This document shows, in pieces, positions 6,955 through 34,155 of a stretch of 64,000 nt of DNA; within the stretch, counting starts at the first letter, position 1, and each line of letters begins with the position of its first letter. Source of the stretch: Adineta vaga (lineage: Eukaryota; Animalia; Rotifera); NCBI GenBank assembly GCA_021613535.1, contig CP075497.1, forward strand, positions 13,826,001 through 13,890,000, given 5' to 3'. The notes below the pieces were generated by a model. It saw only the letters and a list, made by a program, of their open reading frames with translations, made no database searches and had not been told where the DNA came from. The position numbers were made by a program, and so were the translations under genes.

Positions 6955-7371
6955 AGGTAATAGTAATATCGGACACAATTATATTAAATCTATTAATGTG
7001 TAGTGATATATGATCTGAAATATATATGAAGAATGCATAAATGAATATTATATTGAAAGAAAGTAGTTTTAACATTGCAATAACTAAATAGAACAATGAA
7101 GACACATAAGAGTGATACTATGAAGTAACAAATAAATAAAGAACACTATGAAATCAAAACAAAAGAGAAAGTTGGGTTTTCAAAACAATCTACAATATAA
7201 CTACAAGACGGACTAAAAAAGAAAATGTCTAACTTAAACTTTGTGCGGACATATTTTCATAAGTTCTTCAATTGGTTTTTGTTTTGTTAATAAAGTATTT
7301 AAGGAATAGATTTGTTTCGAATGTAAAATAGTTTGAGTATTTTTATGCACCAATTGTGGATCTCCAATAAG

Positions 7372-7411
7372 ACAAGATAACGCTCGTCAAGAGTGCCTCG
7401 CTTGACGCTCG
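7372..7411 (-). mobile_element. Helitron/Helentron-like 3' terminal hairpin
   Basis: Minus strand CGAGCGTCAAGCGAGGCACTCTTGACGAGCGTTATCTTGT with a CGTCAAG/CTTGACG stem; similar copy on + at 54599-54637. Confidence 0.5.
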
Positions 7412-8097
7412 ACTGAAGAATTGACAAAAATGAATTTATTGATTATTCCTGCTGAAAAGCGTTTAGTTTTGAAAATGAATTTTTTCATCTTGCTTACATT
7501 CTAAAACATCATGAATTGTTACAATATCATTATTATCATATGGTATCATTTTTCTTTCATCATTTATTTGTGAATATTTGTTGATATTCCTATAATATTC
7601 AAAAACTTTAACTTAGTGAATTTTATGGTTTACACAACTGAGATTCTAAGATGGATAAGAAAAGTACAGTAATCATTATACAACAAAATGTTAGAGAAGC
7701 AAGCAAACATCTGCATAAATTTCTTAGCACAATCATCATCTCTATATCGTTGTTCATGCAAGAAATCGAAAGTAGATTTTTCGAATGCTTTCATGTGTTT
7801 TTCACGTTGATTGGTGTAGTAGGAGGAATTGCATATAATTCACACCACACCGACTTAGTATCGCAAAGAATGATAGCTTTCGAGAAGGGAGCACTGTGAA
7901 GTGCTACTTCGAGGTATTAGGTACGCGCAATCAAACAACCATCAATAACTAATATCACGCACGCATTAATCAATGAATTCCATTATGTTCAATTTGTCAA
8001 CAAGAATTATATTAGTTTCATATGATGGGGAATATGATTTTGTAGCAAAATCATTTACTTTAAAAGTAAATGAATGTGTAAATAATTAATATTAAGT

Positions 8098-8461
8098 GAC
8101 AAAACCACAAAGACTACAAGACCACAAAGACCACAAGACCACAAGACCACAAAGACCACAAGACCACGAAGACCACAAGACCACAAGACCACAAAGACCA
8201 CAAAGACCACAAGACCACAAGACCACAAAGACCACAAGACAAGACCACAAGACCACAAAGACCACAAAGACCACAAGACCACAAGACCACAAAGACCAGA
8301 AGACCACAAGACCACAAGACCACAAGACCACAAGACCACAAAGACCACAAGACCACAAGACCACAAAGACCACAAAGACCACAAGACCACAAGACCACAA
8401 GACCACAAAGACCACAAAGACCACAAGACCACAAGACCACAAGACCACAAGACCACAAGAC
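8098..8461 (+). repeat. Irregular tandem array of GACCACAA/GACCACAAA
   Basis: Directly visible 8/9-bp units with rare GACCAGAA/GACCACGAA variants; degenerate at its left edge. Confidence 0.97.
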
Positions 8462-8730
8462 GGTCTTTGTGGTCTTGTGGTCTTTGTGGTCTTTGTGGTC
8501 TTTGTGGTCTTGTGTCTTCTGGTCTTTGTGTCTTGTGGTCTTGTGGTCTTTGTGGTCTTGTGGTCTTGTGGTCTTGTGGTCTTCTGGTCTTCTGTCTTTG
8601 TGGTCTTTGTGGTCTTGTGGTCTTGTGGTCTTGTGGTCTTGTGGTCTTGTGGTCTTGTGGTCTTTGTGGTCTTGTGGTCTTTGTGGTCTTGTGGTCTGTG
8701 GTCTTTGTGGTCTTGTGGTCTTTGTGGTCT
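8462..8730 (+). repeat. Inverted tandem array TTGTGGTC/TTTGTGGTC (candidate left TIR)
   Basis: Reverse complement of the preceding array; the switch occurs at caagac|ggtctttg. Confidence 0.97.
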
Positions 8731-9726
8731 CAGAGAGATAAGAGTTTTCGTGATTCTGTACGAAGTATTTGATGCAGATATGGATACACAGAGAATTGAA
8801 TTTATACCAGCAAAGACATATAGAACAAGTGCTATGGTAGTCATATGAGGAAGATAAGCTAGCGAAGATATGTTCGCCCAACATCAAAATATCTTTCATT
8901 GTAATCTATGAACGTTTATTCTTTGCGTTTTAGAGTTATAAATAGAAAATATTGATTTTAAAGGAAAACAAATCTTTCGCGTTATGTCATTTCTTTATTG
9001 TCAATCACGGAAAATACTTTCTTATTATTTAACAAAGTTAGCGGAAAAGCTTTAAATTTAATCGATTGATGCTTCCGCATAAATTCTTAGATTAATAGTT
9101 ATCACATGACTATGAATGTAAAATAATCATCGATGTATTATCCAAAAATTTTTCTCGTATTGTGTATATGAAAAATACGCTATGAATATGCACCATGTTA
9201 CCGACAATTGAAAGCGAAATGTGAGCAGTCAAGAGAAACTTCGTAACAAGAAATATATGAGTGCTTTTATAAAAAAAAAATGTTTATGTTGTAATCCCAC
9301 ATGCCATATATACACATTATATTGTTGCAGTACATCTCACTTATGTTCTCTCTTGTTATTATATGTTTTAAACGATAGTTAGTTCAAAATATAAGCAGTT
9401 AAATCTGAAAGAAAGGTAATTTGAATTCTATTAGTAGAACTAATGTTAAATTATACTCTAATTTCAACATGACTTGAATATTACGTTGAAATCTTGTTCT
9501 TATTCTAATTTAAGATATCAATACATTCAAAATAAGAATATATCTAAAGTTTGCATTGATATCATATGTAGGATCTTCAATAAGTGATGCTTATTTGTTT
9601 TTACTACTTAAGCGATCTCGAGTAAGAATGTGTTGAAGTAGTCGTTCATGTACGACTGGACATCAAATAGCTTTAATATTTATCTTTTATGTTTCAAAAA
9701 AAAATTCACTATGATAAATGTCAGTT

Positions 9727-12175
9727 TCAATCCTTTTCAATGTTCCCAATATTCATAGTATCTATTACTTTGTCAGCAACTTTAGAACCATATTCATGAT
9801 TTTCATCTTTCAACATTAGTGTTTCAAATACACAATAACTTTGATACGTTTGTTGACCTTGAATCACATTTTCAAGATGGGTATTGAAAATAAGACCACG
9901 ACGAGCAGGATCTTGATCAAGTGTATCACAATTTTTCAAATGAAAAAGTAAAATTGTAAATAATGCTGCTGTAGGATAAGAAAAACTTCGTAAAGATGTT
10001 TTAAAATTGGTGAGATACGAAAATGTTTGTTCAGCAACGCTTGTGTTGATACCAATAAACTTTATTTTGTTTTGTTCGGAATCAGGATTGAATAAAGTTT
10101 TACATAAATTACCTGTATGTACTGTATTATGAAATCGATCTGTTACCAAAGTCATATCCATTAATTGTTGGGAATATTTCGTTTCTTGCATGTATTCAGT
10201 ACCAAATCGATATCTCCAGAACTTATATAATTGACATGCAGCATCATAAACTAATAATGAAGGTAATTTTGCTCCAAGTTTTAACATTGTTAAAAGATGA
10301 TCGGTGATTTTGCGAGGTCCTTCATGATTAACTGAATCAGAAAAACCAATAATAATTCCACAATTTAAGAAGGAAGCAATAAAACCCATCGATCGTTTCT
10401 TCGATTCAAAACGTTCTTCCATATCATTTCGGCCAACATTACATTGAGATTCTTTATGATCAAGTTCTTTAAGATATTTCAAATATTTTTGTAACTCATT
10501 ATCTGACATTTTCGTTTCCATTGACAATTCTTCAGTATGTTTGTCTCGATGATAATCACAATAATGGTATACATCATCTAAAAGTAAAAAACATTCACAC
10601 GATTTGTTATCAAACAAAAGTCGATATAGGAATTCAGTATTTTCTCTTTCAATTCTCATTCCATTAAAACAGTTGAAAATAGTTCAAGGATATTTCTCAT
10701 CAACTCATTAATCCATATGAAAACACGATGAATAATGTTAAATTAAAACATTAAATTCCATACATACTATTTAATTCTTGATTATTCGATTTCTTTCTTC
10801 TTGGCATGTATGGGCAACCTTTGTTGATTGGCCCAAGCTCGGCACTATTAATAATACTGGTAACATTATCATATCTGCATACTAAACGACGTCTAAATCA
10901 GGTAAAAGAACATTATTTTTATTTAATAAGATACTTATTGAGTATTTTTAAACATTCTAAATAAAAAGCTCATGATGAATTAGTGAAGCTTTCTTTGAAG
11001 ATTAAATGACTAATTCATTATTTTATCCTAAGCGATGAAAAAGAAGTTTATTGAAAACAAATAGATCATACAGAAGTATACTTCTATCTTGTTCCATCTT
11101 TGATTATGAGCAAAGTTAAAAGAAACATTTTCAAGAAAAAAACATACGGTTTTTGATGACCATCAATAACCATAACTTTCGAGCAGTTACCACATTTACA
11201 TGCACCAAAGACGATTTCGTGATGTGACCAAAAAGTAGTGAAAACATGGTAGATCCAATCCAAGTTTCTTTCAATAAATATTGCTCTTAATGATTGTTGA
11301 CCTTTGATTCTTGTTCGACCTTCACTCATAGCATACGGAAAATGAATATCCGTTGATTTACTCGCCATTAATATAAAATTTGTTAATTCATAATATAGCC
11401 AAACAGCTTCTAAATTTCGAGCAAGATTATCTGCTGTAATATTATCTTCCCTTTTGGGATGAAGTCTATTGAAGACTTTTATCGTAGCAGAAGAAAAACC
11501 TTCAAAAGTGGCATAATCATCAATTAATTGCGAAGAAAAAGAAATGAGAATTTCTTTCGAAAAGACAGTAACACCGGAAAAATGAATAAAATCAGATTGT
11601 TGTGATTCAGCAGTGACGAGTGTTTTCTTTTGATCTATCAGGTAAACAGATGATACACGATAAGAACGACGACATGGATAGCAGTCGGCTTTATAAAGAA
11701 GACATGATTGAACTTTCGTGCAGTAAACAACATAACCACATGATTGGAAAATTGTTTTCAATTGTGCATTACATATACTACATATGGTTCGATGCGGTAA
11801 CAGAAGAAGAGGACTAAAATTTCTTGCAAATGCAGATTGAGGTTGAGAATGTTTGTATTCGTTCAAATAATGTTGTATTGTCTCAATACTACAATCAAAA
11901 ATCAATTCTTGTTGTATATTTTCATTACCCATTAAGATATTATGGGCAATAAGTACATCATTGCTTGAATAATCAATACCAGTTTCTTTTTTTAAAATGA
12001 AACAAATAAAATCGAGTCGTTCTTCACTAGTACAAGGCGGTGGTAATGGATAAACATAACTAGCGGGAATTAGATGGCCGACATTGATAATGATCGTAGC
12101 TGCTTTGAGAGTTCGTTTATTTTCATCTGGAAATGCTAATTTGAGACGTTGGTATACAACTTCAATGATAGACAT
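9727..12175 (-). CDS. KDZ-family transposase with CxC5/CxC6-like cysteine clusters (3 exons, ~670 aa)
   Basis: Exons 12175-11148, 10892-10768 and 10577-9727 splice in frame. N-terminal CSIC...CYPCRRSY cluster; CKCGNC..VIDGHQKP RRLVC...GCP...YCDYH; catalytic-region motifs NCGIIIG, LVYDAACQL, DRFHNTVH, INTSVAEQTF. Confidence 0.85.
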
Positions 12176-12912
12176 TTGGAATAAAGTAAATTTGAATTGA
12201 AGATCAAATATGTCGGTGATTCTAGAAAATACAATCTTATAGAAGGATTTAACGGATAAAGAATACTGTAGATTTCTACCATAGAATATAAATATTCTTT
12301 ACCAATATTCTTTCAATACGGAATATGGGAAACATTTTAAAAATCGCTAGAAAACATCTATTCATTCGTCTGAACGAATTTTTCATTCGATTATTTCAAG
12401 AGAAAGTAAATTTGAATTCTTGAGTATAAAGTTTATTGTTATAATATACATATTTTTCTTATGATTTTGAGTATTACAAATCATGTAACAACAATAATAT
12501 AATATACGTTTTCAGAAAAAGAAATTACATTTGTGAAATTATACCACAGAAAATATACAAATATACTCAATGAAAGTTTTCGATGTCTTCGAAAAAGATA
12601 ATTAACAACACGATGAGTACAATATTTCAGAAAAGAAAAATTAAAGAACAAATTATTTTTAATAAGAAATAGAAATGTTATGAACTAAAAGACATTGGGT
12701 TTGTTCATAAAAAGAAAACTTCGAATTCAAATAAACTCGGTTAAATATCAGAGAAACAAGAAAATTTCAATATCGTAGAAAACAAGTTTACGAATAAAAA
12801 CAATTTTCTCAACGTGTCGACGAAAATTCATCAAAAAATAAATAAAGATTGTGTACCAAGAGGAAAAAAACAAGTACATGATGCTGATCTGAAGAACAAA
12901 AGAGTACCTATC

Positions 12913-15900
12913 TTAATCATCACGTATTTTTGGTTTTCGTTGACGTTTGACTGGCATATCGGTGCCACATATATTTGTAGTTTCTTCTTGTAATTCTTCA
13001 ACCTTCTTTCTTTTATTTATTAATGTTCGTTGAGCCTTTTCTTTTCGTTGTTGTTGGAATTCATCAATCTCTATAAAAGAAAAAAATAGATGATTATGAA
13101 ATTTCGAATTATATAAAATTTGTCACTTACGATAATTAGACGTGGTTTGATTTAATGTGCTTGTGGTGTAAATAAATCTTTCATTAATTTCCATATTTTG
13201 TTTAAACCATTCGTCATTGTCTATTTGTTCTTGTAATACATTGCTAAATAAATACGATTGATTGATAATCTTTCCATCAATTTGTCGTTTGATGTTTTGA
13301 TTTGGATTTAAAGAAAGTTTATACTCTTGAATATCAATACCAAAGTCAACTAAATTGATCGCCACTTGAGGATCAGTTGGACTTCCTTTCAAAAAACCAT
13401 TAATCGAATCACCTTTTGCATTACGAAACCAATCACCTTTAATTAATATATTTTTTAATATAAGATAATCAATTATTTTGAATCTGGACTTTTCGTCGAA
13501 AAGTCTAGATGGTATCATCTTGAATAAATCTGTAGATGTGCCAATAATGAACTGCCGTTTCAGAATAATTGATTTCCATGTGACAGATTTTGGATTTAAA
13601 ATAAGATTGTCGACTTCTATAAATACATAACATTTTCTAACATTTTTATATAAGAAGACATTTTTTCCTCAAAGTAAAGTCAAATAATAATTTACTCAAT
13701 CATTTATTCGTTAAAAAAAACTATATCTTCATCATCCTCATTAGCTGTCTAAAACTGACACAATTTTTCTCACATTATTTTCATTCATAGAAAAAACCTT
13801 AGTTGAACATTTATCGAAGTTTTTCTAGAATATCACTGATAAGAAGGCAGATTTGATAGTCTTAAATTATCTCGCTTTATCGACACTGCACAGTGAATTT
13901 ACAATGAAAACTTCTACCTTCTGTGGACCATTTTGATGTTATATTTGTTTTACTTGGTCGACCACGTCCTTTTGTTTTTGAGATATCTTGATCATTAGAA
14001 TCTAAAATATACAGATTTCAATCAAAAAGCGCTTAGTTTGATATTGTAAAATACTTGTTGAAGATCGATTCATATTATTTGTAACATTAGTCAACACCAC
14101 ACCCGTATTTGACAACATGGGTTCATATGTTGAATTTCGTTCATCTATAAGAAAATACAAAAATAGTTTCTATTGAAAAATTATAGAATTAAACTCACCA
14201 ATTGACATGGAATTATCAACGAGTTCATTTTCACTTGATTTATCAGTCATATTAATTGAATCAAATTGTTCATCATCATCAAGCTGTTCATCATTGGTAA
14301 CAATATGGTTTCCATTTGAAACTAAAGAATGAAAAACCGAATGAATATATTTTACAGCACTAATCGTAGACAAAAATATGCTCTATTGTATGAAAACTAG
14401 CAATGTGGTTCGTCATTCTATCTTATAATTGATTTTACCAGGACGTTTTTATTATTATTTCGAACGATAGAACAAACAAAATAACCTGAAGCTGATGCAG
14501 GACCAATACTAATCGATGAAGCCGTTGTTTCATATGTAATTGAACGATGTTGAAAAGAATCTACGCAAATAAAGCAGTTTGAAAAAAAGAAACTCATTTA
14601 TTCTGTCAAATGCAGTTTATAAACAAATGGAATAAATATTTGTTATTCACTTACATTCCATAGATGATTCAGTTGAGGAATTGCCACGAATAGAATCTAG
14701 TATATCATGTACTGCCGACATTTGTTCATTACCAGTGATATTTGTTGTTAAATTTGTTGATGTTGCATAAGAATGTTCGTTTGTTGTTGTAGTATTTGCA
14801 TTAACTGGATCATAATCAAGAGGAGCTTCCTCAACCATTGATTGAACTAGTTGATCTATATAAGAAAGTAGATAATGTTATTATTGCAATTTATTACCTG
14901 TCATAGATTGTAAACTATTATTATCGTCGATTTCATCACAAGAGACAATACTAATTCCATTTGTTGTGTTTGTCACGATTTTTGGAAGAGTTTTGTTCGA
15001 TTCAGTCATTTGTTTCTTTTGAATATGCTCATTCTGTTGGTTATTACTGGGTGTACGACCACTTGAATATGAATTATCTACGAGAAAAAAAGGAAAAAAA
15101 GATTCACAAATACAAATGAGAATGTATGATGTACGTAAATTTGTACAAACTTTTATCCGGTATGATTTCGCCCAGACGAACACGTTCATGTACCATCTCT
15201 CGGAATGATTGAAAACGATCGTCTTCTTTATAATAGTTATGATAATATTGTACAAATTCATCGTTCAATTTCATAAATTGAATAGCTTCATCAGTAAATT
15301 CGTTTCCCATTGGTAAATATTGATGTTCGAATGTTTTTTCATAACGTGACATATCCAACCCTAATCGCTAAATCAAAGAGAAACATCATTTTAATTACGT
15401 TTTAATTATGATCAGTATTCGTTCATATTTTATCTTATAATCGTCTTTAATTTAATCCTCATTTTTAATAGCCTTGAGTTTATTAACAGCCTTACATTTA
15501 TTCTAAGTTATGCATATATCAAAAAGATAATATATGTTAATACTTACTTCGAAAGTTTGTTCAATTCGAGGATTATTTTTAATTGTTGATGGAAACTGTT
15601 TACAAAAAGATGAATATTGTAAATCTTCTTTACCACTACGAACATTTTTAATAAAATTCCCACCAATCAATAAACCATCGTCGATTAAGGTACTCAAGAC
15701 TTCATCAGGCTTCATATCAGTAGAGTGACAAAATTGTCCTGATCCTACGCCTTGTCGTTTATTGGTTAAAAAAGTTCGAGAAAAAAACACGACTGGAAAA
15801 TTCAATACTTTCGTCTTGGCCTTGTCCAGTTTGCAATCTTTTTGACTTCTAAATGGAAATAATACATGAAAATCTATCTCCATCATTCTATAAATACATC

Positions 15901-17907
15901 AACTAACTTTTCAGTTGGTTTTTTTCCTAATCGTTCGTTAATTACGCCGTTCAATGGTTGAAGTGTAAGAAGATTTTCGACAACCAGCATTTTACGTAGA
16001 TACCAAGTATAACCCACAGTAACATCGTTGATATTTGACCATATGATCCATTTAGAACGATCAATTCGTTGACATTCAGCCAATAAAAAATTATTTATGG
16101 ATCTTTCCATAGCATGTTGAAATGATACATCAATCGAAGCCAAATTGGATGTTAATCGATCACCTTGTTTTTGATCTATATACTTCAAGTTCTTGCTCAT
16201 TAATCGAAATATAATACGAATAACTTTCATTGACCAAATGCATTTTGATAACATATTGACTACTTTACGATAAATTGATTTTAAATGTTTTTCAGAAGAA
16301 TTCGATGATTTCCACCAGTCATTGATTAAAGATGCCAGAAGTTTGAAAGAAGAAGTATCATGATTGTGACTTTGACTGCCATAATAATCGTCCTCTCGAA
16401 TATCATTGCTAGTCAAAGAAGCAGCATATGTTGCTGGTGTTGTAATGTTTTGTTTTTTCAGTTCTTCCAATAAACGTTCTTCATAATCAATACCTATATG
16501 TGAGAAAAAACGAAACATTCAATAAGAAATATATATGTATAGATAACAATGAGCCATTGACTCATAGAAAGAAGATTGTGAAAGGATATCATACACTGAT
16601 CGAAATGAATCTCAACAGATTTGCAAAGGTGGAATCCTTATGTTTGATAGTTATAATTGAAATATGAAATAGATACTCACATTCTGAATTGATTTCAGCA
16701 ACATCAGCTTTATCTGCCATATAACGAAATTGAAGTTGATTTTTAAAAAAATAAGTAACTGAATGTGCAAAATGAGGAAAAGAAGGAATATGTGTAAAAG
16801 ATTTTGATTTCATTTTTGGTAATTCATTAATAGACTGACACCATGTAAAGAAGACACGTCCAAAAACACCATCTTGAATTCGTGTTTCATGAAAACGTTG
16901 AAGCATTGAAGTTAATTTTGTACCTGTACTTGCAACAAACATGTTAAAAAGTGCTACTGGTCGGTTGATTTTGATTTGTAATACACCTGTTCCTCGAATA
17001 AAACCACCACGAATACCATCGGATGCATCGCAAAATAAACTTACACCACCGGATGTTTCATTTTTACCTTGTTCATAGTAACCTAATTTACCAAGTGCAA
17101 CATCTCCATCCGAATGTAATAGTATGGTATTAATTTTTGCTAAATTTGTAAGTAATGCTACTTCTGTTGTATTGGAAACCACCAAAGAATATTCTGGTTC
17201 TTGTGATTTGTTTTTATTTTTCTCCATATGAATGTTTTGATCATTATCATCATTTTCATTGTTTGGATTTCGTTTTGCAGATGAATATCGATCAGGAAAT
17301 GAATTGATAACACTTTGTAAAGCTGCTGACACTTCTTGGCAGATTGAACTTTTGTTGGATGCTAAAATAAAGAATAAGTTTTAGTACTAGAATATAATCA
17401 ATCAAAAGATAATTTTCGACAAGATTTTTCGTGAAAAAAGTATCCTTGAATTATTTATTATTAAAAATATATCATTTATGATGGATAATGTAAAAATATC
17501 TAATTTCATTTCTCAACATATGATTCCTATTCTAAGTTCTGCCGAATTCTTAGAAGTCAACAGAAATATATACATCGAATTGAATTGTGAAGAACACTAT
17601 ACATACCACTTTCACCTAACAAATGGTGATTTTGATTCAAGAAACCAATACTGTTATTAACTGGATTATAAAAATATGATTCATCAGATAATGCACCAAT
17701 GATGGCATTTAAACCTGCCAATGTTACTTCATAAGAATGACCATTACGTTGTTGTTCTTTTAAGAAACACAGTAGATACCAATCATCTTCTTTATCAAGA
17801 AATTCAACATCAAAACTTGGTAATGAATTTAATTGCTGGAAATTTGCATCAAGAACCAATGCAAAATCATTGGGAATTGCATGTGATGATGTTCGATTGT
17901 TCGCCAT
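12913..17907 (-). CDS. Large multi-exon protein: N-terminal DUF3987-like P-loop NTPase/helicase domain plus two repeated C-terminal domains
   Basis: Intron 17362-17606 joins LLGES|ASNKS (Walker A-like), followed by TTEVALL, ILLHSDGD (Walker B position) and DGVFGRVFF (Arg-finger-like). Co-oriented ORFs continue to the stop at 12913 (...KRQRKPKIRDD*). Internal exon borders only partly resolved. Confidence 0.65.
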
Positions 17908-19024
17908 AATATATCATAAAATAAAGCTTGTTTTATCTAAATAGTAAGAAAACAATTAGAAATTTAAAGATATCTTACAGAGAGAGACTAATTCATATAA
18001 ATGCGTTTGAATCGTTCAAGTTGGTGGTATTTATAAGGATCAAGTATAACAAAGAAATTTTATTCAAATAATGAAAATGACCTGGACAAATGTATTCTTA
18101 TCATAATGTACACAATGAATTGAAACCGACGGACTATTTATTATAGCAACAGAAATAAAGAAAATAAAGGCAGAGAGATTATAAGAAAATCTTTGTAACA
18201 AAGAACGCATCTTACTTCTTCTTGGCAGTCGAGTCAACTAAGATTTCCGAATACAAATATCTATTCAAGATTAAATCCATTTAGAAAAAAGAAAGAAATT
18301 ATTTTTTGTTTTCAAAATACAATTTTATTAATACATTGAACTTATAAACACCAAAACTTGACGAATAAAGATGTCGCCGGAGATCAACATGTATGTATAA
18401 AATGACATCGTGAAATTTTTTATGTTATATTAACGTATTCAGATGGATAGTATAATAATGGTATGTACGATACAGAAAAGAATAGGAGGATAATTGAATT
18501 TCTAGATAAAAATCATAATTTTATAATTGATTATAATACAGTCAATATACACTCATTCAATTGATTGTACATATATATGTATTATGTACAACAAAAAGCA
18601 GTTTCTACAAAAAATTACCGTTCAACAGCAATAATGTACCATAATGGAAACCGACGACAGTATTATCATGTTATCTTGAAATGATTATATTGAAGTTTCT
18701 ATAATTTTCAATGCAACTATAAAAGATCGATAATGATCTGAAAATTTTTAATATGGTTATTCATACATAACAAGATAATCTACCAACGAATTGATAATTT
18801 TATTCATTTATGTTGTTATTGTTCTATGAATGTTTATCAATACTCGAATAAATATTGCTTCTACGTCAATCATTTTATTCTTTCAAATAATTTGTAAATC
18901 CTATTTTCCTTTAAAAATAGTGAGCTTATAAAACAGAAAGGCTTATTGTTACTAAGTAATATGCCTATTCATGAACAAATTTCATATTAATGCACTTCCA
19001 AAAAAATCTCTTTCATTAGGACAA

Positions 19025-19346
19025 TGATTCTGTATTAATGCATTAAAATGCATTATTTTAATAAAACCTCGTTGATTAAGATCATGACTCTATATCAATG
19101 CATTAATATGCATTATTTCAAATAAACCTCGTTGATTAAAACCATGACTCTATATCAATGCATTAAAATGCATTATTTTAATAAAACCTCGTTGATTAAG
19201 ACCATGACTCTATATCAATGCATTAAAATGCATTATTTCAAATAAACCTCGTTGATTAAGACCATGACTCTATATCAATGCATTAAAATGCATTATTTGA
19301 AATAAATTTCGAATAGACCGTTGGTCATGTATTAATGCATTATAAT
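19025..19346. repeat. 60-bp tandem repeat (~5 copies) with an internal palindrome AATGCATT-aa-AATGCATT
   Basis: Successive 60-nt lines 19021-19320 are near-identical (ATGACTCTATATCAATGCATTAAAATGCATTATTT...AAACCTCGTTGATTAAG). Confidence 0.95.
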
Positions 19347-21090
19347 GCCTTAGTAACGTTTGATTGAGGAGAGTTTGTTGGGTATATTTTTACATATTTT
19401 CTTTAGCAATCATTCAAGGAACGTGAAAATGGAGATTTTGTATCAAAAAGTCTTTCCTTAAATAATGGTAAACGATACGTTTCTGTCCTTTTTCTCCGAT
19501 GATCATCCTTAAAAATTCGTTAAAAGGTCACTATGAAGTTGATTATAAAATTTACATTAGAAAACGAATGATTCGATATCAGGCATAAATAGATCTTTTT
19601 TCCCTTTCGTCTGTTTTTTTGTTGAACGGCATACATGGGGTTCGGGAATATGATTGTTCACAGAAGAGCTAAACATAGTAGATGGACAAGAAAAGAAAAT
19701 TTAATGATGACTTCGACGAAATTAAATTTAACATGGAGAGTTGAAAAGAAATTGATAGTATATGAAAAGAAACAATGATTTATTCAAAATAAAATTTATA
19801 GAATTGATAAGTTCGAAAAATAAAGTTGTTTATGTTAAGTGGTTGAACAATGGATGCATGATATATCCTTCGATTTATCTATTGTTTTTATAGTTATTGT
19901 TTGAATTATTTGATCTTATTCGAAATTAACAGACACATTTGAAAAATACTCTACACAATACATTCGAGTTAAATTTGATCTTGTTTCCTTTTACTTTTTT
20001 CTGATAAAGAAAGTAAAAAAAAGAAAACAAAATGTTAATATGGAAGGAGGTAAAACACAAATAAATAGATAGTTGGGAAAGGAAAAACAAATAATGAACA
20101 TCACCTAATACAAGACCTTTCGAATTTTACGAATCAACTGAGTGTGTATAGATGCATGTAACCAAATCTGTTTTCTACTTGTATGTTATCAAAATACCTG
20201 AGTTATTCATTTAGTTATTTTTTGTCAGCATACTTTATGGTATCATATTGGCTTTTTTCGTGATATAACAATTTTTCCTTGAAGAATACCTCAATATTAA
20301 AAGTCTATAGACTTTTACTGTAGATTATATATCTGAAAATAGTTCTTTATTCCATTTACAAATTTAAAGAGTATCCTTTAGTTTCATTTTACAGCAATAA
20401 AATGCATTGTCACTACATCACTGTGATGATAATACAAGTAATATTACATTATTACATATGATTTGTGTCTGATACTTTGCTACGAATCGAACGTTTTTCT
20501 TCAGCACTTGTTATGTATGAGAAATAATTTAATTAAATGATGAAATTCTTTTACAATGATTATAAGCATGATAGTTTAACATTGAATAGTATCTTGATGT
20601 TCAGGATCAATGTGTTTCTTTATTAATAAATAATCATGCATTGTCATTCTTGTGCATCTATTTCTTTTAATTTCTCCTCTTATACCATATGACATCAAGA
20701 ACTGATGAAGGTGAAATTACTCATTACACTTCTACGCTAGGATACATCGAATCTTTGAAGAAAAATCGGCAATTAAATTTTCTATGGAATTATGTCAAAT
20801 TCATTGGTCATAATTATCGAATGCATTCATTTTTCTTTAGTACATGTTTATGATTTAATCTATATACTAAGTCAGTATAAGATTTTATATTTAACACACG
20901 TGAGAATCGACATTCTTTTTATTTATAAAAAAACAATGAAATAAATTGGCAATTTAATATGGTTTTATTTGAGGATCATTACATGTTCAAATCAAAAGAA
21001 TTAAATCACACGTTAATATGATGCATATTCTTACGACATCTATTGATATAATAACCTCCATTTTTTTGTGCCAATACAGAAATGTATATA

Positions 21091-22294
21091 CACTAAGGTG
21101 CAAAAGTCTTTGCCCTACATATAGCTTGTCTTTTTCACAATATATGTTTCGAAGTTTCTGGAAAGATCTTTCGAGAATGTTCTGGCATGTGAGGAGGACT
21201 ATATAAACAACTATATGTGCCGTGAATCACCGTTAATATCTTTTCTATGATGAAAAAAATGTCTAAACCACGTAATCTATATTCAATGAAAATAGTGCGC
21301 TCGACTATATTATATCACTGGAATAATGGTCAACGATCTCCTCAAACCATTGCTCGTATGACAAAGATCCCACTTCGAACTATTAAATATAATATTGCGA
21401 AGATCAAAGAACAAGGTACAATCGAGGATAAACCGCGTCGTGGTCGACCTCATAAGGTCACTGCTAAAGATCATCAAGCACTCGGTCAATGGATTCGACG
21501 TGACAACGAGATAACATCAAAACAATTAGCAGAAAAACTGCTTCACGACCGAGGTCTGAACGTATCCCGATGGACTGTTCAACGTGAACTTCATCGAATG
21601 GGTTATAAGAGTACTTTACCACGTGGTACACCAATGCTGACTCCACAGCAGAAGGATGCACGTGTTCAATGGGCAATTAAACATCAAAACGATGACTGGA
21701 GTCGAACAATTTTCACCGATGAAACATGCTATCAATTGTTTCGAAATACCATACGTCGATGGTCGGGCTATCATTCTTTCAATACAATCATGGATGGTAA
21801 ATTTTATGTTCAAATTCTTCAAGATCATCTTATTTCCAATGCTAGAAAGCAATTTGGTCGACGATGGCGACTTCAACAAGATAACGATCCCAAACACACA
21901 AGTCGAGTGGCACAACATTTCATATCCAAAGAAGTACCTGAACTAATCGACTGGCCATCAAATAGTCCGGACATTAATCCGGTGGAGAACTTGTGGTCAA
22001 TTATCAAACACCATGTTGAAAAACGAAAACCAACAAATCTTCAAGAATTGGACATGTTTCTACATGAAGAATGGTACAAAATTGACATGGCCGTTATAAA
22101 TCATTTGATACGTTCCATGAAATCACGATGTTTAGCTCTGATTGCATCGAAGGGAGAGAGAATCAAATATTAAATGTAATACTTTTGTACCTTGAACTAT
22201 ATCTTATCTTTGTATATATTTAGTTTTTATATGGCTTACTTCTTTGCTAATAAATATTTGAAATAATGAGGGCAAAGACTTTTGCACCCTAGTG
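21091..22294 (+). mobile_element. Tc1-family DNA transposon
   Basis: 26-bp TIRs CACTAAGGTGCAAAAGTCTTTGCCCT / AGGGCAAAGACTTTTGCACCCTAGTG (1 mismatch); TA on both sides (21089-90, 22295-96). Confidence 0.95.
21247..22173 (+). CDS. Tc1 DD34E transposase, probably with an in-frame internal deletion
   Basis: HTH, GRP, FTDE, QQDNDPKH, WPSNSPDINPVENLW (34 residues between D and E). The usual VWG segment after the first D is missing. Confidence 0.9.
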   Translation: MMKKMSKPRNLYSMKIVRSTILYHWNNGQRSPQTIARMTKIPLRTIKYNIAKIKEQGTIEDKPRRGRPHKVTAKDHQALGQWIRRDNEITSKQLAEKLLHDRGLNVSRWTVQRELHRMGYKSTLPRGTPMLTPQQKDARVQWAIKHQNDDWSRTIFTDETCYQLFRNTIRRWSGYHSFNTIMDGKFYVQILQDHLISNARKQFGRRWRLQQDNDPKHTSRVAQHFISKEVPELIDWPSNSPDINPVENLWSIIKHHVEKRKPTNLQELDMFLHEEWYKIDMAVINHLIRSMKSRCLALIASKGERIKY

Positions 22295-22667
22295 TATATT
22301 GAACGTGGATTACATGATTTTATTGTTCAATATTCAATAGTATTTTTATTCAAATTTCTATTCGAAATATCATATTTCAGATATTCATTTCGATTTTGGT
22401 ATTATTTTCCAATAATTATAGATTTTGAAGAATTATTGTTTTTTGCTTATTAATCATGACAAGAAAATCATCATCTAATAAAATAAAAAAAGTCGATCGA
22501 TCGTAAATCTGCTCATTCGTGTAAAAAGGTCCATCATCGATTGATTTTCGTTCGAAATAACTATTTGGACTCATCTGGTTAGTCAAATTGCTTTCACCAA
22601 ACATATAAAAATTAATACTTTGGATAAATAAATAAAACTGAAAGAGTCATTCATTTTTACTTTTAAG

Positions 22668-25011
22668 AGGATGAATCGTCAATGAATAAAAATATTGAAC
22701 CAACAAAAATTGGTAAAAATAATAACAAGAATATTTTGTCAAATTCTGACTCTACAAGTAAAATTTTGCATTTTGATGACAATCAAAAGCAATTGCCATG
22801 TTCTAATCAAAGTAAGTGAAAATGTGCTTCATTCATTCATTTCTTTTCTGATCGGTCTAATATTACTTGATATTTTAGCTATTCCACCAGGTGCTACCCA
22901 CTCGTCGATTGAAATTCTTCATGCACCAGATAAATCATCATCTTTTTCACCAAAACCAAGTTTCAGTAATGAAAATTCTTCAACAATAGCTTTATCATCA
23001 GGTATTGATGAAAGTTGATCGTTATTAATAAAGATTTTCATTCAAAACTAAATAAAAATAAAGCTTTGTATCATTTTCATTATTGGAAAAGAAATGAGAA
23101 GTCGATTCTATATTTATTTATGTCACATAATTTTCTTATTATTTGAAAGATCTTGACTTATGTTATCTTATTGTGATTGTTCTTTTATAGGTTGTCACAA
23201 GGAGGATCAGAATATAAATTCTTCGTGCACAACATGTAGTGAATTTCAAGAACAAATTTTTCTTTTGAAACAACAAATAAATTTTTATAAAACACATTGG
23301 ATACCTCGGTTAGCTTTTGATTTGCAAATACAATACAAATCAATTAGTTTCTTTCATAGGTCTGTCGGTTCGGAACCACAATATTCTTCTACATCAACTC
23401 AAACAATTGATGAGGAAAATTTTCCTCATCATACACCACAGGTTGTTTCTAATGAACCAAAAAGTATGTTCGAGAAAAAATTCAAAAAAAATTTTCACAA
23501 AATGAATTATTAAAACAGTTAAAGATAATGAGCAATCGCACATATTTAAAGAACAAAAAAATCTAATAAAAATTAAACAAGTTTCTGATTTGAATTGATG
23601 TCAATCCCTATAAAAAAAAGTCAGAAATAGATTTTAACGTAATCTTGTTGAAGAAAAATCGATTTATATCACTTCATAGAATAATCTATTTTAATTCATT
23701 TTAATGAATTAAATCTTCTAGAATGATTCATTGTAATCAAGTTGAAAAATTATAATTGATCTTCATAGATGTTTCGAATAAGAAAGACTTTTGATTCATT
23801 AAACTTTACAACAAGCATATTTAGATTTATCGTTTAAATCGATATCGGTTTATTCAGTTTTTTTAAAATAAAAAATTCGGTTTTCACCGGTTAAATAGTG
23901 AAATTATTTTTTAAAATCAATTCTTGAATATCAAATCTATTAAAATCATTAGAGTTTAATGAAATCTAGAAAAAGACAAGTATAATCATAAAAAAGTTTT
24001 AGTCAATTTTGAATGATCTTTTCATATAAAACTTTGATGAAAAATGAGTGAAAATCATAGCATTCGAGTTTATTATTCATCACAGAAAGTCTATCAAAAT
24101 GCATTTCAGATTTTTTGATATTTTAAATCATTTATGTTTTTACGTTCAAATTATTAATATTTTTCTTGAAATAGTTTGATAAAGTTTCTCAATTTTTTAG
24201 AAGGAAAACATGATGAAGAAGAGGAAAAACAACAACAACAACTGAAAAAAAAGAGAAACAAAAAGAAAACAAAAAGACTTGCAGCCATTTTAGGTTTAAC
24301 TTTTGATGAAATAATCAAATGTAAAAAATCGACAATCACCAGAAGTTGTCGAAAAATAATTAAAACCATGTATCCCACGAATAAATTACGCCAAAAAGAG
24401 CGGATTTCATCGATGTCGTCAAACAAACTTGATGCAGTACACGGTAAAGATATTTTAAATTCGATTTATATCTAATGAAAAAAAGTACAGAAAATATCAT
24501 GGAGTACTGGACAACATACAATAGACTATTTTGATAAGATTAAGAGGATTTCGAGGATTTATACATAAAGACATACATTAGAAAGGAATTGTCTACTCGT
24601 CTTTGTTTTATTTTGCATAGCTCATTCAAAAATAATGATCTTTCAGCAAAGTACATAAATTTGATCTTTGCTCATAACTATATAGCGTTCTTCTTAAATT
24701 TCACTTGTGACTATCGATATAAGGCTTTCAACCATTCTTCCTATGATGGAACACACTATTTACATTTTAACTATTATACATAAACATAAAAATGTATCTA
24801 TACGAGTGGAGTATTCACGTATAAATATCAATATTATTGGCATTGTTGCCCATTTACAAATATATATATATAAACTTCTCTTTTGATAACGATAATAATT
24901 AAAGATTTTTTTTTAGATTTGGTCAAATTATTCCATCCAAAGCAAAAACAAACACCAGCACATGTTTTAAATAACGCCATAGGAAATGTTTTTTCTGTTG
25001 CTCGTCGATAA
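22668..25011 (+). CDS. Multi-exon gene ending in a BEN-like helical domain (5' exons unresolved)
   Basis: Six phase-compatible GT-AG exons. C-terminus LAAILGLTFDEIIKCKKSTITRSCRKIIKTMYP...LDAVH|DLVKLFHP...VLNNAIGNVFSVARR*. The BEN assignment is by resemblance only. Confidence 0.55.
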
Positions 25012-26548
25012 AAAAAAAGAATACTTATTTTGTTATTCGAATAGATAAAAGAATGTTTTTCAAAATTTCGATCTATATAATTCTTCTATAGGATATGTTT
25101 ATGGGCTAGCCTATACAAGATTAGATTAAACTAGGAAAAAGTAGCGAATATGTTTCTGAGCCAAACGTCCACAGAACAATGTGGTTTGTTGGTAATTCTA
25201 CAGAAAAAGAGTAGTTTTTTAAAATCTTAATATTGTAAACAATATGTAATTGAAAACGCCAATTTCATAGTTATTTCTCATCTCACTACTCATACTTGCA
25301 CAAACTCACCATGTAAAGTTCTAAGAGAAGAAATGAATTGTTACATGATAGAATTTTGTTGAAATTATTTTTCACAGTAAACTCTTTGTATCGCACAGAG
25401 GAAGCTAGTGACAATGATCAATACTAAGATCTATTTTTGAATTACTTTTCACCAACATTACATAATTTGAGAAAAGATAGATGTGGCCCTATAATAATTG
25501 GCGATGAAAATGTTGAACACGATCGATACTTGATTGAAATTATCCTTTACAATAATAAAATGCATCCATTGAAAATTCAAAGGTACAGATTATGAAGTTT
25601 GAAAAAGAAACAATGATTTTTATAAAACATATACAAAAGGAATCTAGTTCTAATCGCGTTAGTCAAACACCTAAATGTCATATCAATAAAATCCAACTGA
25701 ACCGCATTTTCTATAAGAGTGTTGCTTTCTTCGTGTACTGTGAAAAATTTAGAGCTTCGCCGAAATTCATTCGAAAGGGCAATTTCATGTCCAAAAGCAA
25801 ACATGTAAGAGAATGCATAACTTTATTCGAATTCATAGTGATCCCAAACAGGCATACACCATATTCACGGGCACACTTTACACCTGAGAATAGGTTATTT
25901 CCTCTGAACGAATTCACAATGGACGACAGAAACTTACTGTCTAATGATATGTTACTGAAACCAACCTAGTTAACGATACTAAAGTGAGTCCCATCTACTT
26001 TCAAGTTTTGTACCATACTTTTCCGCTCTTCAAATAACATCGGCCGCTACATTATACACTATGCTCAACTAAAAATTTCATGTCATTTGGTAATTTTCTA
26101 TCACAACCTCATATCTTGAAGACCAGCTACTATCAACAAAGGCATAGAAGCAAATTACCATTGAAATCATTACGAAACACCTATCTACAGTCTCTAATCG
26201 ATCACAATCCCACCATACAAACTCGAAGACGCTCCATTCACCACATTATTTCCATTATGGCAGCCATCGACAGAATTCCATAAAATATCGAATCATCATT
26301 GAGGCTATCACGCAAAATAAAAATAAAATCCATGATAGAAACTGGGAAATTCCCGATTATGTCCATCACAAACGGTAAAGCTAAACTCTATAACTGTTAC
26401 CTACTACCAACGAAAATTTAGATTTCCCGCCGGAAAACGCTAAAACGCAACAAATCAGATATTCCCGATGTAAATATATGTATTAAGGTCTATAAAACAG
26501 AATTCACCGGCTATTCACCTCTGAAGTCGACGTAATATTCGGTTTACT

Positions 26549-26997
26549 AAGACCACAAAGACCACAAAGACCAGAAGACCACAAGACCACAAAGACCAGA
26601 AGACCAGAAGACCACAAAGACCACAAAGACCAGAAGACCACAAGACCACAAAGACCAGAAGACCAGAAGACCACAAAGACCACAAAGACCAGAAGACCAC
26701 AAGACCACAAAGACCAGAAGACCAGAAGACCACAAAGACCACAAAGACCAGAAGACCACAAGACCACAAAGACCAGAAGACCAGAAGACCACAAAGACCA
26801 CAAAGACCAGAAGACCACAAGACCACAAAGACCAGAAGACCAGAAGACCACAAAGACCACAAAGACCAGAAGACCACAAGACCACAAAGACCAGAAGACC
26901 AGAAGACCACAAAGACCACAAAGACCAGAAGACCACAAGACCACAAAGACCAGAAGACCAGAAGACCACAAAGACCACAAAGACCACAAAGACCACA
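26549..26997 (+). repeat. GACCACAA(A)/GACCAGAA array organised as a 59-bp higher-order repeat (candidate right TIR)
   Basis: Unit of 9+9+8+8+9+8+8 bp repeated about 7.5 times. Confidence 0.97.
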
Positions 26998-27138
26998 CAT
27001 TCCAGGGAAAAGCACTATACCACTATCACTCCCATAGTGTGACAATTTTCTTTGGATATAAACTCTTCTTAAAAGAAGCGTTCAGTCGTTTACTTAACGC
27101 ATTGCATAAGTAAATTAATTATTTTATTTTGTCGCAGA

Positions 27139-27652
27139 ATGTGGTTAAATTCGAATTTGCCGCAAAATCAAATTCCCCATGAACTCAAGTTTATATCATC
27201 AATTACACCGATTTTCCATCAAATTCGTACCAGTGATTTTGTTCGTGATGCATGGCTCAATTACGTTAACTATCGTCCATTTCTTGAAGCACAATTTCAT
27301 TATTTTGCAGATTTTCGTCATTCAGCTTATGCTTTTTTTCAATGTTACGTACACTTTGTAAATTAGCTTTACAAATAATTTTGTTATTATACTTGATTCA
27401 GTTATATTAATGGGACAAGTGAATAATATGATGATTAATCGATTAGGAACAAATTTGCAATTATTTGTTATAACATCAACAAGTGATAATCAATACAAAC
27501 AAGCTTGGTCATATCGTCCGTATCCAGACAACGACAATTGTACACGTGCAAAAGGTGTCTATTGTACTCTATCAACAGGTATTTACTCGAGAAAATCTAA
27601 CAATAAAACGTCCTCTAATATACATTACGTAAAATTAACACAGAAAAAGTGA
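27139..27652 (+). pseudogene. Degraded fragment of the membrane-protein family seen at 38388-45960
   Basis: FISSITPIFHQIRTSDFVRDAWLNY resembles FLSLSPVLHRICSSDYITESWI; frameshifted. Confidence 0.55.
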
Positions 27653-33392: not shown

Positions 33393-34155
33393 ACTCGAAA
33401 CTTGAATTCGAGTATTCAATTAACCAAGTATTCTAGAGTCCACTCTTTTGATATCCAGACATAACTTCAAGAGTTACACAACTGGCACAGAAAGAGAAAA
33501 CATGTCGATTTTTAGGTACGCGCGCTCAGAAGGCCTTTGGCCCTCTTCGCTACCGGTCTCCATAGGCGAGCGCTCAGACGGCCTTCGGCCCCCTTCGCTA
33601 CCGGTCTCGATAGGCGAGCGCTCAGACGGCCGCCTTCGCTATCAATTTTCGCCCTGTACAGAATCATGCTATATCATTCGTCGGTCGCACGGCATCCTAC
33701 TAGCAAAACCGTGACTTATTTTTTCCGCAACAAAGTAGATGTTAACCTTCCGATGGATCAAAGGAATTGTCAATGGACGATTGACGACGATAGCCATTAC
33801 AAACACTAAACGCACAGCAAACAAACGAGCTTTCTTCTTTATGTATATAAACAGAACAAGAAGACAGCGAAACCCATCGCGCCTATATATTTGACATTGG
33901 CATTTCTGTCAGAACACTTTCTTTTACTCAATTAAGGACGAACTCAGCTGTCCACGAAAAATGTCCCAAATCATATGTCCAATATTGTCATCTTAGTTTT
34001 CCGCCAAAAATCAGGCAACTCACCTCTTGTCACACCTTCACCCCACCCTGAAGGTGATACACTGCATCACGCTTCGCAGCACCCTCACTCACAAATCCTG
34101 CATCACGCTTCGCAGCACCCTCACTTACGTGAATACTCGAATTCAAGTTTCGAGT
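33393..34155. mobile_element. Non-autonomous TIR element (MITE-like)
   Basis: Perfect 26-bp inverted repeats ACTCGAAACTTGAATTCGAGTATTCA / TGAATACTCGAATTCAAGTTTCGAGT. Internal GC-rich direct repeats at ~33521-33641 and 34063-34126. Confidence 0.75.

Follow-up and report, generated by a model that had tools for sequence, protein, structure and literature searches.

The last 67 kb of chromosome C6 of the bdelloid rotifer Adineta vaga, most of which is taken up by the 64,000-bp window analyzed here (C6:13826001-13890000, on a contig of 13,893,210 bp), raise the question of whether a KDZ-type DDE transposase and a DUF3987-like P-loop nucleoside triphosphatase (NTPase) can be parts of one transposon and, if so, where such a transposon begins and ends. 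The original prediction, made from this stretch of DNA, had proposed that positions 8462-26997 form a single giant mobile unit, with inverted arrays of 8/9-bp repeats as its termini 18.5 kb apart and a transposase, a P-loop gene, a 60-bp array and a BEN-like gene between them. By comparing the locus with the whole genome (100.8 Mb, six contigs, ~30% G+C), we arrived at another reading, which we consider very probable: positions 8019-27186 are a rearranged, probably immobile copy of a cut-and-paste transposon of the KDZ (Kyakuja-Dileera-Zisupton) superfamily, bounded by terminal inverted repeats (TIRs) and paired with a DUF3987-like gene. The features on which this reading is built are the following (window positions; ORF, open reading frame):

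8019-27186 (19,168 bp; genes on the minus strand): whole copy of a KDZ/Zisupton-like transposon of a family termed W1, collinear with C2:141055-153766 past both arrays and carrying the family TIR at its ends
8019-8055, plus strand: left TIR (End A), beginning CATATGATGGGGAATATGATTTTGTAGCAAAATC; core 8025-8049, matching the reverse-complemented right end (27156-27180) at 22/25 positions
27150-27186, minus strand: right TIR (End B), finishing ...GCCGCAAAATCAAATTCCCCATGAACTC; core 27156-27180, matching the left end
8099-8461, plus strand: extra array (GACCACAA/GACCACAAA)n, 43 units, not in the C2 copy
8462-8730, plus strand: left subterminal array (TTGTGGTC/TTTGTGGTC)n, 33 units
26549-26997, plus strand: right subterminal array (GACCACAAA/GACCAGAA/GACCACAA)n, 53 units, also read as 7.6 copies of a 59-bp higher-order repeat with 99% matches
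9727-12175, minus strand: KDZ-type DDE transposase gene with two large exon ORFs (11084-12175 and 9727-10659) and an intron between them, identified by BLASTP, motifs and a protein-language-model Atlas
12916-17907, minus strand: multi-exon DUF3987-like P-loop NTPase gene, with exon ORFs 17557-17907, 16589-17332, 15883-16518 and 15503-15886 followed by 3' exons to about 12916

The limits of the element were set by a sister copy on another chromosome. A genome DNA search found C2:142255-153619, 84-85% identical to the window copy, and in pairwise BLAST the same locus also matches window positions 8011-8101 and 27052-27186, outside both arrays. In its full extent (141055-153766; 12.7 kb, 84% identical), this copy holds both genes, the same TIRs and a target-site duplication (TSD) matching at 7/8 positions; its homology with the window begins at CATATGATGGGGAATATGATTTTGTAGCAAAATC (8019) and ends at ...GCCGCAAAATCAAATTCCCCATGAACTC (27186), the flanks being unrelated. 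The two arrays, called with Tandem Repeats Finder and by direct reading of the sequence, are present and mutually inverted as had been claimed, with (TTGTGGTC)n on the left, (GACCACAA)n on the right and long minus-strand ORFs between them, but the element ends beyond them, at the TIRs (8019 and 27186). Indeed, the C2 copy has at the array positions TGTTGTGGTATAGCGGTATAGGTGGTATTGTGG on the left and TAAGACCACCTATACCACTATACCACC on the right, likewise mutually inverted and amounting to just 3-4 repeat units, and the arrays are thus copy-specific expansions of subterminal motifs. The 8/9-bp arrays sit just inside the ends, and the termini are the imperfect TIRs of ~30 bp that enclose them. The left array moreover extends further than had been seen: the 43 units at 8099-8461 had been missed and, together with the following 33 units, they make of 8099-8730 an imperfect head-to-head palindrome whose arms are not mirror-exact and which might conceivably stem from the assembly. 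As for the right array, the 99% identity between its higher-order units indicates that it expanded recently. A 25-mer of the array, searched with up to 2 mismatches, occurs in the genome only at the two array sites of the window (reversed control, 0).

Members of the family were sought through the TIR. With ≤3 mismatches allowed, the genome contains 58 matches to its 25-nt core (28 forward, 30 reverse) and the reversed control 0/0; many of these matches are inverted pairs lying 0.2-1.7 kb apart. For the TSDs, termini were set six bases outside the core and the flanking 8-mers compared in 12 elements: the two long copies (window and C2) and ten short inverted pairs of 195-1,728 bp. The 8-mers agree at all eight positions in two elements (TTCGTGGT and CTAGTTAG), at seven in two others, including the C2 copy, and at six in one; for random pairs of 8-mers, p=0.0011 at ≥7/8, and the probability of at least four such pairs among 12 is about 8e-10. 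As Zisupton and Dileera make 8-bp TSDs, the 8-bp duplications of W1 fit Zisupton/KDZ elements (PMC12730594). One derivative of 1,126 bp (L006) has W1-type ends and a perfect 8-bp duplication and otherwise consists of (GGKGTCTAY)n followed by inverted (RTAGACMCC)n; it is a foldback-like derivative, with a 9-bp unit unlike that of the window. The units of the window copy, the C2 copy and L006 have in common an A[TG]ACC[AC]C-like core at 8-9-bp spacing, and the ends of the family are asymmetric (5'-CATATG...GAACTC-3'). It is hence shown that W1 is a TIR-bounded transposon family that makes 8-bp TSDs and has short foldback-like non-autonomous derivatives, and that its subterminal 8-9-bp motifs, opposite at the two ends, expand to arrays independently in each copy. 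Alignment of copies, a check put forward with the original prediction, has thus defined ends and an 8-bp TSD for the family; for the window copy it gave no TSD, the flanking 8-mers agreeing at 3/8 positions. We also observed a third, more divergent W-type copy at C2:16240735-16244246 (L004), with a KDZ protein 64-72% identical and a GAGTTA-type end that recurs in several inverted-pair derivatives of ~0.4-0.5 kb (L007, L008 and L011); sharing this end, L004 and these derivatives are a separate subfamily.

Regarding the transposase, four loci pass the cut-off in a six-frame genome search with PF18758, all of them outside the window, and it is through these loci that the window gene is connected to the KDZ group. 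By BLASTP, ORF 9730-10683 matches the PF18758-passing ORF C3:18357280-18358245 with 35% identity (E=1e-36), as well as C1:17436437-17437792 (E=1e-18) and C5:775509-777368 (E=2e-18), which pass too. Alignment with KDZ ORFs reveals conserved GF.A..CG..E, YDxAC, D(R/K)(F/L)H...H...C and N..xEQxFS motifs; the window gene has DGHQK, YDAAC, DRFH..H..C and AEQTFSYL, its D/D/E-bearing motifs align, and DGHQK, the first aspartate motif, stands at the end of the upstream exon. In the protein-language-model Atlas, the nearest cluster is rotifer KDZ (score 0.94, 198/256 features in common). As to the N-terminal zinc-chelating CxC cysteine cluster of KDZ transposases, the exon ORF 11084-12175 is cysteine-rich (CSIC...C...C...C.PC), and CxC Pfam models give no match on it; the transposase of a second family described below and its A. 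ricciae ortholog match CxC5. Judged from its sequence, the window gene is a divergent KDZ transposase whose catalytic triad appears intact in this copy; the C2 copy has in-frame stops. Between these two copies, the ratio of nonsynonymous to synonymous substitutions (dN/dS) is 0.20-0.26 in the main exons of both the transposase and the NTPase genes, and a value of about 0.2 implies selection on coding capacity.

The second gene was assigned by profile comparison. Protein homologs at this locus are all from bdelloid rotifers (Adineta, Rotaria, Didymodactylos), and exon ORF 16589-17332 has homologs in bdelloids and metagenomes only, all without Pfam annotation. A profile built from the homologs of the window NTPase and run against 1.84 billion proteins gave 30 matches, four of which carry PF13148, the DUF3987 model: P0071, P0073 and P0078, from two presumably bdelloid NCBI assemblies, over the cut-off and P0067 weakly. 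Compared by hhalign with the canonical rotifer DUF3987 family, the window family aligns over 150 columns with 96.6% probability (E=5.5e-10). A 916-amino-acid gene model (P0055) aligns to the window exons over its residues 12-689, with no stops within the exons. The Walker A motif of the window family, GES(A)SNKS, is split by an intron and departs from the canonical GxxxxGK[ST], and its Walker B is hhhH-(S/P)-D-G-D instead of the hhhxDExD of relatives, the canonical form being hhhhDE; the Lys-Ser pair and one acidic residue are retained, and the DUF3987 protein of the second family has an intact DE. Membership of the window NTPase in a DUF3987-like P-loop family, as the original prediction had it, is thus supported at the level of sequence profiles, though without a direct Pfam match and with non-canonical Walker motifs. 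DUF3987 has been placed among the superfamily 6 helicases, and a bacterial PriCT-DUF3987 protein, AgaPH, has been characterized as an oligomeric, ATP/dATP-dependent 5'-3' helicase in a mobile-element replication module (PMC11724360). Separately, two Rotaria gene models overlap: P0052 starts with the AT-hook-like sequence in which P0055 ends (...KKRGRPNSAHAKSEKWSHD) and then runs on into KDZ exon 2, which suggests either read-through or alternative splicing joining two genes, or a gene-model error.

Six-frame profile searches of the genome returned 33 KDZ loci, which cluster near chromosome ends, and 16 NTPase loci. Of the latter, 14 have a KDZ locus at a distance of 2.3-7.1 kb, against a chance expectation of 0.1; conversely, no NTPase was detected near 19/33 KDZ loci. 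The two genes also occur together on the same foreign contigs, metagenome ones included, and two of these contigs are collinear with the window. Adineta ricciae has an annotated 572-amino-acid CxC5+KDZ gene 1.1 kb from a 715-amino-acid DUF3987 gene, and Rotaria socialis has a KDZ ORF, 52% identical to the one on C5, 1.2 kb from a DUF3987 gene. In A. vaga, a second family (family 2) is represented by C1:17427387-17450777 (23.4 kb) and C5:763864-781989 (18.1 kb), which are 99% identical and both carry KDZ (PF18758 and CxC5) and DUF3987 (92 bits) genes. These copies begin with CATACATG... and finish with ...CACTACTC; inverted 52-bp arrays of unequal lengths (0.35-2.3 kb) begin about 35 bp inside each end, and each copy is flanked by a perfect 8-bp TSD (GTTTATTG and AAATCAAT). 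Given such identity and perfect TSDs, family 2 must have been active very recently. A third element, at about C3:16371057-16396355 (~25 kb), has inverted ends 87-89% identical, inverted 86-95-bp arrays, a KDZ protein 32% identical to that of the window and ORFs resembling the 3' part of the NTPase gene. Foldback-like ends, that is, inverted arrays of variable copy number, are accordingly found in the window copy, L006, the C3 element and family 2. The expectation that inverted arrays repeatedly enclose KDZ and DUF3987 genes is borne out in general terms (W1, the C3 element and the C1/C5 family), but the GACCACAA arrays are unique to the window copy.

Several side observations were made on family 2. 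Its C1 copy has a ~2-kb insertion (17434479-17436470) that splits the KDZ ORF, and the family-2 copies also encode a 774-amino-acid ORF without Pfam match and a weakly GDSL-lipase-like ORF. Furthermore, a protein of Adineta ricciae (P0080) is 95% identical to the family-2 DUF3987 protein (L018:7661-8908), and the neighbouring KDZ ORF is 88% identical; these values seem high across species, and the element may have spread horizontally in recent times.

The copy in the window has itself undergone changes, which involve the following features:

18796-26457 (7.7 kb), unstranded: right arm without C2 counterpart, collinear with C3:16387517-16372226 at 66-84% DNA identity
18999-19306, unstranded: 60-bp tandem array, 5.1 copies, within the C3-like right arm
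21089-22296, plus strand: nested Tc1/mariner with 27-bp TIRs, a TA duplication and a 308-amino-acid ORF at 21247-22173 (Pfam HTH_Tnp_Tc3_2, 1e-15; partial DDE_3, 4.5e-10)
7366-8018, unstranded: flanking dispersed repeat, cut by the left end of the element, with a 97% copy at C2:16161978-16162626

Where the window has 18635 to about 26490, about 0.9 kb stands in the C2 copy. The right arm lacks the 6.7 kb of the C3 element that hold its KDZ gene, and it lacks both C3 termini; a clean nested insertion at 18796-26457 was ruled out, neither C3-type terminus being present. As the DNA similarity of the arm is far above the 32% protein identity of the transposases, it resembles exchange between elements and not common descent, and the right arm looks, from these alignments, like the product of exchange between KDZ elements. 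The mariner was inserted into this region, the C3 homolog showing its empty site, and its ORF is the only large ORF of the window element that Pfam scans recognized; this ORF matches the C-terminal part of the DDE_3 model only, hence the mariner is probably internally deleted, and relatives lie at C2:95352-96649 and C1:948970-950143. The interior genes claimed by the original prediction are therefore partly upheld: the KDZ and NTPase genes are there and so is the 60-bp array, but the interval also contains the mariner insertion and a 7.7-kb stretch like the C3 element. A BEN-like gene had to be rejected, as no match to BEN (PF10523) was obtained on the ORFs at 22.6-26.3 kb (E≤10) or in the window by six-frame genome search, and the Atlas gave no usable match for ORF 24176-24475. 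On the left flank, the repeat at 7366-8018 has >30 genomic matches, among which copies of 97% and 87% identity run on into ATAGATCGATTG...; this continuation is absent from the right flank and from the whole window. Neither an empty nor a filled site of the window copy was found, and the right flank matches unrelated loci. The window copy is thus rearranged and chimeric, and it is probably no longer mobile. Beyond the element, a 48-bp tandem repeat (33522-33631; 2.3 copies, 93% matches) is G+C-rich amid A+T-rich DNA.

A number of results weigh against our reading. No direct match was obtained on the window ORFs with PF18758 (hmmscan at E≤0.1 and E≤10; six-frame genome search) or on the window exons with PF13148 (Pfam scans to E≤10; six-frame genome search), so that both identities, KDZ and DUF3987, depend on homology that is transitive or profile-based. 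The searches used the exon ORFs of each gene model individually. AlphaFold2 did not confirm a P-loop fold: residues 1-520 of P0055 were modeled with a pLDDT of 46 and the canonical rotifer DUF3987 ORF with 64, its core being disordered and below 50. With the latter model, Foldseek found no match in the PDB at E≤0.001, and a PDB sequence-profile search returned chance matches only and no relative. Among the W1 members examined, 7/12 have poor TSDs, and no TSD was found for the window copy. The array units vary among copies of one family, which weighs against strictly sequence-specific transposase sites. As to expression, three probable RNA runs yielded no contig over 8740-14700, which covers the KDZ gene and the 3' part of the NTPase gene, and an index search with 9000-18700 found almost none of its words in probable RNA runs and no such run that holds the stretch, though the genes need not be silent for that.

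Eukaryotic cut-and-paste transposons are generally taken to need a transposase alone, ATPase partners being a mark of Mu, Tn7 and IS21, and helicases a mark of Helitrons. What the second gene of the rotifer elements might do is of interest. We propose that the KDZ transposase would excise and integrate the element, and that the reiterated subterminal units may serve as binding or synapsis sites by analogy with En/Spm. The DUF3987-like protein would be an element-encoded accessory factor, either a helicase-type motor or, by analogy with MuB, TnsC and IstB, an ATP-dependent helper; with its altered Walker A and B motifs (GESASNKS; S/P-D for D-E), it may bind nucleotide rather than hydrolyse it efficiently. 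Four later changes would then have shaped the window copy: array expansion, inverted duplication of the left array, replacement of the right arm and insertion of the mariner. A bolder proposal is that a bdelloid KDZ lineage permanently recruited a DUF3987 superfamily 6 replicative-type helicase of prokaryotic mobile-element origin that is required for movement, be it by unwinding or replicating donor or excised DNA in a replicative or episomal phase, or by MuB/TnsC-like target selection. We put this forward tentatively and think it somewhat doubtful; if true, the recruited helicase would make these elements the first two-component DDE system of such a kind described in animals.

The most serious rival to such a role, although in our view an unlikely one, is that the DUF3987-like gene is a mere passenger that the elements captured, perhaps by horizontal transfer, and that takes no part in transposition, comparable to the TET/JBP genes or the uncharacterized ORFs of fungal KDZ elements. 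Fungal KDZ elements do bear cargo genes (PMC12730594; 10.1101/2024.08.15.608186), the window family has degenerate Walker A and B motifs, and an NTPase was not detected near more than half of the KDZ loci (19/33); short derivatives without the NTPase gene have also transposed, though the protein could have been provided in trans. However, the linkage is found in both Adineta and Rotaria and in at least three families with KDZ proteins sharing only 30-35% identity, the NTPase gene is under purifying selection as the transposase is, and with 14/16 of its loci KDZ-linked it has essentially no life outside such elements.

That 8462-26997 is one intact giant mobile unit, with the arrays as termini and the BEN-like gene included, is now very improbable. 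It is true that the arrays are mutually inverted and near both ends, and that other KDZ+DUF3987 elements have inverted end arrays too; but the sister-copy homology and the TIRs extend outside arrays that are unique to the window locus and have 3-4 units in the C2 copy, the right 7.7 kb are missing in that copy and resemble part of another element with a mariner nested inside, no TSD flanks the window copy (3/8), the repeat on its left is interrupted, and BEN is unmatched. What endures of the original prediction is a large DNA transposon linking a KDZ DDE gene to a DUF3987-like gene, as the 14/16 linkage attests, while its limits and its unity were wrong. Finally, a subtelomeric segmental duplication of ordinary DNA with old transposase relics, and no transposon family at all, could be invoked from the position of the C6 and C2 copies within 60-155 kb of chromosome ends, where KDZ loci cluster, and from the missing TSD of the window copy, but it is scarcely credible given that in both copies the shared sequence ends precisely at the TIRs, the flanks being unrelated, that the C2 copy has a 7/8 TSD and short derivatives with the same ends have perfect 8-bp TSDs on other chromosomes, and that a dN/dS of about 0.2 points to selection on coding capacity.

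The reading of the locus as a rearranged copy of a TIR-bounded KDZ transposon with a paired DUF3987-like gene has several implications. A KDZ gene and a helicase-family gene are stably linked across divergent families and rotifer genera, under purifying selection, and the recent activity of family 2 offers a testable animal system for the contribution of an NTPase to DDE transposition. The same reading accounts for one type of giant repeat found in the subtelomeres of bdelloids, and it shows the origin of foldback-type array ends in short subterminal motifs. For annotation, it means that these elements and roughly 50 short derivatives appear to be missed by standard Pfam scans. In the literature searched, which included neither the original Zisupton/KDZ papers nor Repbase, so that a prior mention of a P-loop partner is possible, we found no link between DUF3987 and eukaryotic transposons and no bdelloid KDZ elements; a review of giant transposons makes no mention of KDZ.

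How these elements compare with known systems can be considered from the side of their ends and from that of their proteins. CACTA/En-Spm elements have short TIRs, reiterated direct and inverted subterminal motifs that bind an element-encoded protein, and two proteins; they make 3-bp TSDs and have CACTA termini, and their second protein, TNPA, is a DNA-binding protein and not a P-loop NTPase. W1 is alike in its short TIRs, its subterminal motifs, its two-protein capacity and a transposase of a related clade. Foldback elements such as Drosophila FB and Galileo, a class defined by structure and not by descent, have ends made of inverted tandem repeats of variable copy number, and they resemble the short derivatives that are nearly all inverted arrays, such as L006; they belong to other transposase superfamilies and have no NTPase gene. 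In bacteria, Mu (MuA/MuB), Tn7 (TnsB/TnsC) and IS21 (IstA/IstB) pair a DDE transposase with a P-loop/AAA+ gene within the element. To these the rotifer elements bear a functional analogy, with no homology to MuB, TnsC or IstB demonstrated, and they differ by genes with introns and a eukaryotic host. With AgaPH, the rotifer proteins have the DUF3987 domain in common (PMC11724360); they differ by having no detected PriCT or primase partner, by standing beside a DDE transposase and, in the window family, by non-canonical Walker motifs.

The closest relatives are found in the Zisupton/KDZ superfamily, with which the rotifer elements share a KDZ-type DDE transposase, TIRs, 8-bp TSDs and a large size (PMC12730594). 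They depart from it by a constantly linked DUF3987-like gene, asymmetric CATA.../...ACTC ends, foldback-like subterminal arrays, a window transposase too divergent for a direct PF18758 match, and a bdelloid rotifer as host. In fungi, KDZ elements carrying TET/JBP genes have been described (PMC12730594), and the KDZ1-3 and KDZx1 elements of Cryptococcus are multi-gene, 'gigantic' KDZ elements of 6.4-10.9 kb with TIRs, TSDs and extra ORFs without predicted domains (10.1101/2024.08.15.608186). Extra ORFs are thus common to the Cryptococcus and rotifer elements, whereas no tandem-array ends have been reported in Cryptococcus (10.1101/2024.08.15.608186). Large multi-gene KDZ transposons are hence already known from Cryptococcus, and it is the linked helicase-family gene, together with the foldback-like subterminal arrays, that marks the rotifer variant.

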